A stretch of 64,000 nucleotides of DNA from the NCBI RefSeq assembly GCF_000143415.4, contig NW_003314300.1:1644525-1708524 (forward strand), written 5' to 3'. The notes under the pieces are model-generated. The model saw only the letters and a program-made list of their open reading frames with translations. It was not told the origin of the DNA and did no database searches. A program made the translations under genes and the position numbers. Source of the stretch: Selaginella moellendorffii (Eukaryota; Plantae; Lycopodiophyta). This document shows, in pieces, positions 47,634-57,160 of the stretch. Within the stretch, counting starts at the first letter, position 1, and each line of letters starts with the position of its first letter.

Positions 47634-48512
47634 TTAATCGGAAACATTTGCTACTCTCCCACTGCCTCTTTTTTTCATCAGAACCCGTGCTACCATTTCC
47701 CCCATTAACACCACAACAACAATAGAGTCCATGACGCACACCATCCTGTTTCCCCACCTCCAGTTTGGATATAGACGTTTACAGACATAAATTATAGGTA
47801 TGCAACATGGCTCACATAAAGAAAGTATAGGATATCCACCAATCACCTCATATATGTGGTAATGATCTTGCCCTTGGCGGTCACCAAATCCATGATTTGG
47901 AAAAAGCCATCTTTTCGAGCCAAGAAAACGGGGTGTTTCTATGAACCATCTCATTATGGCTGATGTTCCTGCACAAGAATGTGCTATTGCAGACAAAACT
48001 TGCCAAACGATAAACCAGGAGCGATTTGAGACATATGTGCTTGCTAATGCACTCGCTGCTCCAATAAAAATACTAACCAGCATACAGCACCTGGAGTGAA
48101 AGAGAGTAACGATTCCAATAATAGCTGTAAAAACATCTTAGAAATAATATTTTATGAGACTGTCTTACCTCCAATAATATAGCCCACTGATAAAAATGTA
48201 TATATGTGGTGAGTGAAGCAAACAAGCTGCCAATATCGAATCGCAGAGTACTTTGGCCCAATTGTTACATAAGCCAAGTAATCCGACGTAAAACCCCAAT
48301 GGTAGCCAACGTTTAGTGCATTGCAGTCTCTTCGACAATAGAGAACACCACTTGGGCAGTGCCACTTTGGAGGATAAAAAGTGATGTAAATGGTGAAAAC
48401 ATAGAAAGTAATGGCCCAAGTCATAATTATTGAAACAGGTAAGAAGAACCACCACAATGGAACGCTCTTACTAGTAATTTCCATACCCAACCTTTCAAGC
48501 CCTAATAGATCC
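47634..48512 (-). CDS. Half-size MFS/organic-cation-transporter-derived membrane protein, intact copy A (intron 48125-48168; 5' exon uncertain)
   Basis: Removing the 44-nt GTAAG..CAG intron fuses ORFs 48152-48490 and 47634-48083 in frame. PPKWHC..C...C and SAIRYWQLVC resemble the OCT TM1-2 loop. Confidence 0.7.
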
Positions 48513-49149
48513 TATGGAAAAAGAAAGGAATTTAAGCACAAGAATCCCTTTACCAGGGGTAAACCATGCATCTGCCAATTCGATGGAACTTACTTCCACA
48601 ACGATTGAAGCAAAATCGATGTCAAGAGAACGTGGAAACACTCACCGGACAGTGTCTTTCAGCTGCTGTCATTGAATAGATTCTTGTAGAAACAATGCTC
48701 CGGCTTGGAAGCAAGGAAAATCTTCTGAGTGAAATCAAAGACGAGGATCCCGCACACCAAAACCTGGCGATATCGTGAGCAGCTGGCACGGCATGGCGCT
48801 GGAGATTTAGAGTAGGGGAATATCCAAAGTAAACTGACGGATCAACCTCATCACTTGCTTGAAGTTGATCTGCAATGTTGTATATGGCAAGGCTTTTTAG
48901 TGTATCTCGAGTGTTGATAAAGGTCTTCTGATGCCTCGTAACTCCATAGTCTATCATCAAGGTGATCGCGAGAGCGAGTGAATTTTTAACCCAGGTGCCA
49001 GGCCAAAACTCGACATCCATCATCCCGACAGTGCTTAAATTCCTTAAACTGATGGATGTGGGGAGAGAGGTAAGATGTGAGAGAAGAGATGAGATAAGAT
49101 GGTAATAAATCCTTCGTACTCTCATGCGCTTATAGTACGTCCTAACAGG

Positions 49150-54600: not shown

Positions 54601-55130
54601 ATAATTTATGCATAGAATTATAAACTTGATTATTTCTAGTGACAATTCCAGTTAATTGTAATTTTATAGATTAGTACTGTTTACATGTAGATAAGTGTGC
54701 TTCTAAAGTAATTCTAATAGCAAGCATCTTGCTCCCAAGAAAAAAGTTTGATTTAGCTTATAAGCCCAGAAAAGGTTTTGCCCTGTTTGATTATATAAAT
54801 TATTTATTGTTGCCCTGGAACTTATTAAGTTATTTGATTTGTGGAAGTGAGATTTTTGCGTTTGAACCGCAGTGGATCGTCAATAAAGTCAGTCCCGCTG
54901 AAACGTAATATTTTCTTGAATTAATGACACAGCTATCTTTCATTATCAGGCGTGGAGAGCTGGCTGCATGACTGCTCATTCAATGAGCGCACTTTAGACG
55001 CTACAGAGCTTGATGGAGGAAGGAGGATACGGAAGTGGGCTTGCTTTTGTGCTTCCGAGGTATGGACTTGAACTTGTGTTTGTGTTTCCAAACAAGGTGT
55101 TCCAGAAAATAGCGTCGAGTGAGTCCTATT

Positions 55131-57160
55131 AAGGTACTTTGTTATAAACTTTTGACTAGCTCATGATTTCTTTTTCTACAAAACTGATTGTATCCAAGAA
55201 AGGGGATGCCCATCCTATTTCCCTAGACGTCTACACAAGGTATGCAACCTGGCTCGCAAAGAAACCATAGGATATCCACCAATCACTTCACATATATTGT
55301 TGTGATCATCCCCTGGGCGCCTGCAAACTTATGATTTGGAAAAGAAAACAAGGTGCTTCTGTGAACCACCTCATTATGGCTGATCTTCCTTCACAAGAAT
55401 GTGCTGTTGCAGACAAAATGATAAACCATATTTGAGACATATATGCTTGCTAATGTACTCCAATAAAAATAAGAGAGTAATAATAACTCTAATAATAATT
55501 GGAAAAACACATCAGCATAATGAAACAGTCTAAGTTGATATTCCGAGGTATAAATCTCTCTCTCTCTCTCTCTCTCTCTCTCTCTCTCTCTCTCTCTCTC
55601 TCTCTCTCTCTCTCTCTCTCTCTCTCTCTCTCTCTCTCTCTCTCTCTCTCTCTATCGATTTCTTGTGTATGACTGGCAAAGTCGTAATGTCACTGCAGAA
55701 GTCTATGCTGCTATATATTAAAAAACCCACACTCTCTAAATACTCGCATTATCTGTGGCAGCACATGAATTCTAGTTTCAACCAGCCCAAAGTTCTCTTG
55801 ATCACTTTAATATTACACACTTAATTGGAAACATTTGCTACTCTCCCACTGTTTCTTTTGTTCATCAAAACTCGTCCGAACACTTCCCCCACTAACACCA
55901 CAACAACAATAGAGTCCATGACACACACCATCCTATTTCCCCACCTCCAGTCTGGATATAAATGTCTACACACAAAAGTGATAGGTATGCAACTTGGCAC
56001 ACAAAGAGAACCTATAGGGTATGTACCAATTACTTCACATATAACGTTGTCATCTTCCCTCTGACAGTCGGCAAATCCATGATTTGGAAAAAGCCATCTT
56101 TTCCAACTAATAAAACAGGGTGTTTCCATGAACCATCTCATTACAGCTGATGTTCCTGCACAAGAATGTGCTATTGCAGACAAAACTTGCCAAATAATAA
56201 ACCAGGAGCGATTTGAGACATATGTGCTGGCTAATGCACTAGCTGCTCCAATAAAAATACTAACCAGCATAGAGCACCTGTAGTGGAAGAGAGTAACGAT
56301 TCCAATAATAACTGTAAAATCAGTTTAGCAATAGTATTTTATACAACTGTTCTAATATTACCTCCAATAATATAGCCTACTGATAGAAATATATATACAT
56401 GACGAGTGAAGCAAACAAGTTGCCAATATCTTATGGCAGAGTATTTTGGCCCAATTTTTGCATAGGCCACGTAATATGATGTAAAACCCCAATGGTAGCT
56501 AGGGCTTAGTGCATTGCAGTCTCTTTGACAATAAAGAACACCATTTGGGCAATTCCACTTTGGAGGATAAAATGTGATATAGATGGTGAAAACATAAAAA
56601 CTAATTGCCCAAGTCATAATAATTGAAACAGGTAAGAAGAACCACCACAATGGAACACTCGTACTAGTAATCTCCATACTATCAAGCCCTAATATGTAAT
56701 CCTATAAATAACAAGAAAAGGATGTGGATGATGAGGCTGAGAGCTCCGAAAGTTACACTCGGACAGTCTCATGGATTCACCTCGAGTTTATTGTGTTCCA
56801 TGAGGCACTTGTCAGTACGAGGTAAAAGAAGTCAATGGTGTTGGAATCAATGTGAGCGAGCCAGGTACTGCTTTGTACTTCCTCAAAGAGTAAAGGCATA
56901 AACGTTAGAGGTGGTGAGCCATCTTTGCAGGTCACTGGTTGACGCTACCAGGAAATGCTAGAGGATGGATGCATCCTCCAGTCACCATTTGATGGATGTT
57001 AGTGCAGGTAAAAGAATTATTGCTAGAAACTCTTATAACTTTCTTGTGTCTTTGTTGATAATCCAGACACTGGACATCCGCATTTGCTCAGCTCAGACTT
57101 GCCTAAGAGCATTGGCATACATGGAGCCAGAAAAACATCAAAGACTTGACAAGCGTCCTC
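55131..57160 (+). repeat. Segmental duplicate of about 26683-31260 (USP fragment, eroded half-OCT, (CT)n, half-OCT gene, unknown gene fragment)
   Basis: 55131-55210 matches USP 26683-26773; 55210-55550 matches 27560-27880; (CT)n 55555-55653; 55690-56708 matches 28080-29537; 56735-57160 matches 30618-31262. Confidence 0.9.
55821..56702 (-). CDS. Half-size MFS/OCT-derived membrane protein, intact copy B (intron 56312-56361), about 270 aa
   Basis: A 50-nt GTAAT..CAG intron gives the in-frame join GYIIG|VIIGIVTLFHYRCSMLVS; same stop position as copy A. Confidence 0.7.

Follow-up and report, generated by a model that had tools for sequence, protein, structure and literature searches.

Major facilitator superfamily (MFS) carriers move their substrates along a path between two lobes, which are coupled by motif A, and are thought to stem from the duplication of a six-helix unit. 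In the SLC22 carriers, among them the organic cation transporters (OCT), the outer loop spans roughly 100 residues. The SemiSWEETs are ancestral-type bacterial units that have been shown to transport as dimers; separately expressed halves of LacY are laboratory constructs, and truncated OCT splice forms are variants of full-length genes. The present analysis concerns a family of six-helix proteins encoded in a 64,000-nucleotide (nt) stretch of the Selaginella moellendorffii genome (contig NW_003314300.1, positions 1,644,525 to 1,708,524 of the forward strand; hereafter the window). Its coordinates place the window at the end of scaffold GL377604.1 (GCA_000143415.2), of which it forms the final 64 kb, and window positions 620-21273 are 100.000% identical over 20,654 nt. 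On balance, the family is probably an unannotated S. moellendorffii lineage derived from the N-terminal six-helix lobe of an SLC22/OCT carrier and kept by selection, with a mode of action that we infer from known carriers.

The OCT-lobe ancestry is credible for a real, selected family, while function and expression stand at the level of prediction. Searches of the full text of approximately 8.4 million papers turned up no free-standing single-lobe or half-size MFS family and no mention of these loci.

Copies A and B and their paralogues

Copies A and B belong to a small gene family; both are intact and lack annotation. They lie on the minus strand and are delimited by tblastn and splicing as two-exon genes of 268 residues. 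Copy A (47634-48484) has exon 1 at 48484-48169, with its ATG at 48484, and exon 2 at 48124-47634 including the stop; the 44 nt intron between them (48168-48125) is bounded by GT..AG and lies in phase 1. Copy B (55821-56677) consists of exon 1 at 56677-56362 (316 nt, ATG at 56677) and exon 2 at 56311-55821 (491 nt, including TAA), separated by a 50 nt GT..AG intron, also in phase 1, at 56361-56312. If left unspliced, the frame of either copy runs into a stop within the intron. GT..AG introns of 39-77 nt are seen in spliced RNA reads of the gene neighbouring B, so the introns of A and B are of ordinary size here. Two intact hydrophobic proteins of about 270 residues had been expected by the sequence-only reading once these introns are removed; splicing yields both, and the motifs that it quoted are present in them. 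Identity between the copies is 86% at the DNA level and 82% at the protein level. Kyte-Doolittle plots display six hydrophobic peaks at equivalent positions in 5/5 full-length family members, where an MFS/SLC22 carrier requires twelve helices in two lobes.

An HMMER search of 1.84 billion representative proteins with an exon-2 profile has five matches, two of which are genuine: a 253-residue protein (P0003, LOC112342084; here Sm1) and a 416-residue protein (P0004, SELMODRAFT_428178), the family part of which is here called Sm2. The remaining three (P0001, P0002 and P0005) are PKD-repeat surface proteins in which a short W-x-W-D-like stretch is matched many times, and these were rejected as repeat artefacts. 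When P0003 and the family profile are used in word-indexed searches of 5.8 billion proteins, only P0003, P0004 and P0006 are returned, the last being SELMODRAFT_425052, the other haplotype of P0004. Sm1 and Sm2 are 30-40% identical to A and B (tblastn E of approximately 1e-33). All relatives are considered paralogues because they are found only in the S. moellendorffii genome itself; the family so far appears confined to this species in the databases searched, in agreement with the earlier suggestion that it is lineage-specific.

The members share their gene architecture. In A, B, Sm1 and Sm2 the intron lies in phase 1 after the same Gly of the second transmembrane helix (TM2), with lengths of 44 nt in A, 50 nt in B, 53 nt in Sm1 (locus L001) and 56 nt in Sm2 (loci L002 and L003); the start MEIT is common to A, B and Sm2. 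All four contain PLWW, YSAIRYW-L-CFT, QVLSA-H-CA and DW(K/R)-GN, have two exons and a conserved stop, and are approximately 250-270 residues long; family size is 253-268 residues with six predicted membrane helices, and the C-termini fall no more than a few residues apart. The stop falls approximately 15-20 residues past TM6. Sm1 has a patatin gene approximately 480 nt upstream of it and, 215 nt downstream, a PPR gene; given these tight, unrelated flanking genes and the conserved stop there is no room for a C-terminal lobe (C-lobe) at this locus, and the protein truly ends after TM6, as had been claimed from the window copies.

Substitutions between A and B are concentrated at synonymous sites: the non-synonymous rate (dN) is 0.094 and the synonymous rate (dS) 0.314 by the Nei-Gojobori method, a ratio of 0.30, with 44.5 synonymous and 55.5 non-synonymous changes (Fisher p=7.5e-8). 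By region the dN/dS ratio is 0.05 in TM1, 0.25 in TM2-TM4 and 0.46 in the TM4-TM5 region; between Sm1 and Sm2 it is 0.28. The A-B intron is approximately 20% diverged, near the synonymous rate, and synonymous sites are saturated between the two clades (A/B and Sm1/Sm2). Because the bias to synonymous sites is strong, constraint is considered to have acted for most of the time since the A-B duplication. Judged by these substitutions, the pattern is that of a long-lived coding family and not of random open frames; the family is old, with purifying selection visible within each of its two clades.

Resemblance to SLC22/OCT carriers and rival explanations

Searched against 177,635 distinct PDB sequences, the family profile has OCT2 (E=0.002) and OAT1 twice (E=0.14) as its top three matches. 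Family positions 73-161 align with OAT1 122-216, a stretch that includes the W-x-L-x-C loop end, TM2, the TM2-TM3 loop, TM3 and TM4; phmmer with the family part of Sm2 alone finds OCT1 or OCT2 in six of seven PDB matches, over the same helices. Over its model positions 39-110 the Pfam model MFS_1 (PF07690) finds the Sm2 part with E=4.6e-4 and 7e-4, and Sm1 has a weak match at the same place. ESM features point to Sugar_tr/MFS clusters for B exon 2 (0.94) and for full-length Sm1 (0.93, with 197-201 shared features; 172-201 overall). A sub-threshold alignment, colinear with the main match, sets the family's YPDW(K/R)WGN opposite IPHWRWLQ of OCT2. The in-register homology to solved SLC22 carriers is modest, and for A and B the link to OCT is transitive through the paralogues, since a profile of the window copies does not itself reach SLC22.

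The outer loop of the family comprises approximately 50 residues with three invariant Cys and ends in W-x-L-x-C, while TM6 carries an invariant Asp and Glu. In the HMMER alignment the OCT2 segment 'iaDrfGRKlc' faces 'la.lfhyrwc' of the family, and all members have F-H-x-(R/K)-(W/C) there; since D-R-F-G-R-K of OCT2 stands opposite F-H-Y-R-W-C, motif A is regarded as lost, and the absence of a D-x-x-G-R-K motif noted earlier is visible in this alignment. From these comparisons an MFS origin of the family is very probable, and assignment to the SLC22/OCT type is likely, if with somewhat less assurance. The descent from the N-terminal half of an OCT put forward by the sequence-only reading is therefore upheld by the profile and sequence matches (OCT2 at E=0.002, MFS_1 at E=4.6e-4) and falls short at the Pfam gathering score.

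Several results weigh against this reading, some bearing on ancestry and some on whether A and B are live genes. The best MFS_1 score is 19.6 bits against a gathering cut-off of 33.4; no Sugar_tr (PF00083) match occurs in the family, and Pfam searches with the two exons of A and the two of B, each as a separate piece, return no MFS model (LIFR_D2 and CoA_binding_3, which they do return, were judged noise). No SLC22 chain is found in the PDB by a profile of the window copies alone, by phmmer with B exons 1 and 2, or by sub-profiles that cover TM1 plus loop or TM5-TM6; the antibody and SPT16 matches of these sub-profiles are chance. In Kyte-Doolittle plots A and B have a TM5 segment that is rich in Cys and Pro and weakly hydrophobic, and TM4 is also weak. 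AlphaFold2 models are of low confidence (pLDDT 47 and 50, from alignments of 9 and 13 rows); Foldseek gives SLC22 structures as the top nine matches of the first, at non-significant E of 0.27-0.9, and unrelated helical proteins with no MFS for the second. Such results would be expected if the likeness were a chance or compositional match between hydrophobic helices and the family an unrelated, lineage-specific membrane protein: all matches are weak, with E from 4.6e-4 to 0.25 and scores under curated cut-offs, A and B on their own have no MFS match, and exon 2 of the window clade matches a viral glycoprotein equally weakly. The latter, the morbillivirus fusion protein F1 (E 0.014-0.1, B exons and window exon-2 profile), was judged a chance match because F1 is soluble and strand-rich, shares approximately 20% identity and is gone in the whole-family profile. 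A chance origin of the SLC22 matches is nevertheless quite improbable, as independent libraries and methods agree on the same family in the same register; SLC22 chains form a tiny fraction of the PDB, yet hold the top three places with the profile and six of seven with a single sequence. Furthermore, the SLC22-typical W-x-L-x-C sits at the boundary between loop and TM2 with a colinear P-x-W-R-W before TM6, the MFS_1 match falls on TM2-TM4 positions, and ESM features give Sugar_tr for two divergent members.

Whether the genes are alive is a separate matter. Three S. moellendorffii RNA-seq runs, with approximately 9 million reads sampled from each (about 12% of the run), were mapped to the B region; essentially no reads fall on B in any of the three, while the neighbouring gene reaches a depth of 10-30. 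B exon 2 is matched by just one contig, 163 nt long, from a run whose type is guessed to be RNA; with one difference and no gap this contig is assigned to B rather than to its twin, copy C. Searched alone against 5.8 billion proteins, B exon 2 has no match, from which it follows that A and B lack a gene model in any source searched; in these database searches the exons of both copies were entered separately. It could be supposed from this silence that A and B are relics that died recently or are dying now, frames left over in a decaying array invaded by transposons, in which five of the seven window copies are broken, a retroelement sits approximately 100-150 nt upstream of the start codon of A, and copy C has decayed at only about 4% divergence from B. 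Both 268-codon frames and both pairs of splice sites are nonetheless intact despite dS=0.31, the changes are biased to synonymous sites, and the RNA runs are of unstated tissue and conditions; the relic explanation is accordingly held to be unlikely, though less so than a chance resemblance. Lack of expression together with a dN/dS near 1 had been named beforehand as telling against the family; B is almost silent, and its ratio to A is 0.30. A further possibility is that the A and B frames are exons of a larger gene, fused either to an upstream protein or to a C-terminal half downstream that escaped detection. The published models SELMODRAFT_428178 and SELMODRAFT_425052 (L002 10001-11760 and L003 10001-11769) join a multi-pass gene, called X-like after the open reading frame (ORF) X described below, to the family gene; the X-like ORF ends approximately 85 nt before the family ATG at the Sm2 locus, and in A and B the frame is open for 8-9 codons 5' of the ATG, back to an AG, with length differences between the copies in multiples of three. 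At the Sm2 locus, however, these models skip an exon 1 of the family that is complete and has an ATG of its own (MEIT...), and they splice out the fifth hydrophobic segment (TM5), which the Sm1 model of NCBI retains. All five full-length members conserve the start, the stop and the length, unrelated genes border Sm1 closely, A and B have no common exon 5' of the ATG by tblastx, and the intact X of the window is 5 kb away from B and on the other strand; membership in a larger gene is thus highly improbable. With A and B read as complete genes of the family, the annotation of S. moellendorffii is corrected by two intact genes without a model and by two published models that merge neighbouring genes.

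Decayed copies and surroundings of the array

All five of the further decayed copies reported from the sequence alone are located by tblastn with the spliced proteins, as one near-full-length pseudogene and four fragments; E-values for the repeated copies run from 1e-10 to 1e-150, which excludes chance. Copy C (28547-29502, minus strand) is the near-full-length pseudogene, 96% identical to B, and carries deletions of 15, 7 and 6 nt, an insertion of approximately 135 nt in exon 1, and frameshifts of +1 and -1. The fragments correspond to B residues 120-268 at 27465-27813 (minus strand; three frames and an internal stop), residues 69-111 at 45519-45635 (plus strand; short, 40% identity), residues 106-185 at 54334-54558 (minus strand) and residues 142-208 at 55257-55428 (minus strand; two frames). 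That four copies end at one codon was checked and is real (RVANVSD*, RVANVSN*, RVANVCN* in the 27465 fragment, and RVANASN* in copy C). The fragments at 27465, 54334 and 55257 have in common a three-residue 'WQV' deletion and 'CEGRS', and are thereby grouped as a second, fully decayed sub-lineage.

A segment of approximately 2 kb (55130-57157), which contains the 55.3-kb fragment, B and about 450 nt of upstream sequence, has been duplicated as a unit to 26681-31263, where the block holds the 27.5-kb fragment and copy C. The history of the window would thus be one of tandem and segmental duplication followed by decay of most copies, with a retroelement now just upstream of A. This degenerate element (48600-53400, minus strand) retains a reverse-transcriptase remnant with many stops and parts A from the rest of the array; no pair of long terminal repeats was found for it. 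At its edge lies a nearly perfect inverted repeat (53480-53667 and 53902-54095) with arms of 60-91 nt that are 95-96% complementary. Direct repeats of 214 nt, 97% identical, flank the B block at 54909-55122 and 58744-58957, inside which an inverted duplicate of 175 nt (85%) occupies 57158-57310 and 58980-59154; both point to additional rearrangement in this area. A (GA)n microsatellite of approximately 120 nt (55530-55660) lies about 160 nt downstream of the B stop, outside the region to which the RNA reads were mapped. The expressed neighbour of B is a multi-exon gene in head-to-head orientation (57589-58700, plus strand), which has alternative junctions and GT..AG introns 39-77 nt long; its reads are assigned to another haplotype or a paralogue, as they are mostly 95-99% identical with fixed differences.

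ORF X (61831-63240, plus strand) is intact, encodes 469 residues and is homologous to the N-terminal part of SELMODRAFT_428178 and SELMODRAFT_425052; its middle is acidic and of low complexity, its helices are C-terminal, and neither a Pfam family nor a PDB chain matches it. A C-terminal fragment of an X-like multi-pass gene (31476-31607, minus strand) lies upstream of copy C on the same strand. Since this fragment precedes copy C as the X-like gene precedes Sm2, the order of X followed by the family recurs; X stands beside the family at two or three places, for which functional pairing or a shared history of duplication are both possible.

Partly decayed PPR-repeat ORFs adjoin copy A at 46226-47604 (plus strand) and 42662-43852 (minus strand); PPR genes stand next to the family at Sm1 too, which may be coincidence given the abundance of PPR genes in this species. 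A repeat of approximately 590 nt forms an inverted pair around an integrase remnant (32989-33582, minus strand; 34934-35522, plus strand). The same repeat, approximately 95% identical between loci, adjoins Sm2 in one haplotype (L002 13500-14093) but is found displaced in L003, the other haplotype; it probably represents part of a transposon whose presence varies from haplotype to haplotype, and Rfam has no match at it. The region at 620-21273 contains an array of germin-like genes and a PMI1-like gene. A search of plasmid DNA, Rfam and a bacterial promoter scan gave nothing relevant to the family.

Putative role and comparison with known carriers

It is proposed that the ancestor of the family was an SLC22/OCT-type major-facilitator transporter, of which the N-terminal six-helix lobe was retained and the C-lobe is gone. 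The predicted order along the protein is TM1, a short outer Cys loop with Y-S-A-I-R-Y-W-x-L-x-C at its end, TM2-TM4, an extended loop between TM4 and TM5, P-x-W-(K/R)-W, TM6, a short basic tail and the conserved stop; motif A of the TM2-TM3 loop, which would have coupled the lobes, appears to be replaced by F-H-x-(R/K). Because one MFS lobe cannot form the two-lobe pathway of alternating access, the protein is most likely no carrier by itself. By analogy with known MFS carriers it may act by associating within the membrane, either with itself or with a carrier of full length, and this role is offered tentatively; expression would be very low or limited to particular conditions. A more specific proposal, considered doubtful at best, is that of a selected 'semi-MFS' in which the N-lobe, as a homodimer or together with a full-length OCT, would form a cation pathway or a sensor that uses the acidic residues of TM6; if true, the family would be a present-day counterpart of the six-helix ancestor hypothesised for the MFS. 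In either case the family would represent a secondary return to a single lobe that has long been kept by selection, with the lobe-coupling motif lost and conserved TM6 charges gained; if expressed, it would put to a test in nature what a lone MFS lobe is capable of, whether this is to dimerise, to regulate full-length OCTs or to serve in a role other than transport.

The best sequence matches of the family are the SLC22 carriers (OCT1-3, OAT1 and URAT1; plant OCT1-6; the Sugar_tr group of the MFS). Like these, the family has TM1, a Cys-containing outer loop that ends in W-x-L-x-C, TM2-TM4 and then P-x-W-R-W before TM6, and its charges are distributed in keeping with the topology of an MFS N-lobe. 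Unlike them, it has six helices only, with neither a C-lobe nor a central cytoplasmic loop; motif A (G-x-x-x-D-R-x-G-R-K) gives way to F-H-x-(R/K), the outer loop is shortened to approximately 50 residues, the TM4-TM5 loop is approximately 20-25 residues longer, TM6 contains a conserved Asp and Glu, and scores lie below the family thresholds. With the SemiSWEETs the family shares a polypeptide that equals one structural repeat of a two-repeat carrier; the half described here, however, would be a secondary truncation in a plant, with the lobe-coupling motif eroded. As in the separately expressed halves of LacY and the truncated forms of OCT, the N-terminal half of an MFS protein occurs as a polypeptide of its own that may associate with a partner; the S. 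moellendorffii proteins differ from both in forming a separate gene family, with a conserved stop and the marks of purifying selection.

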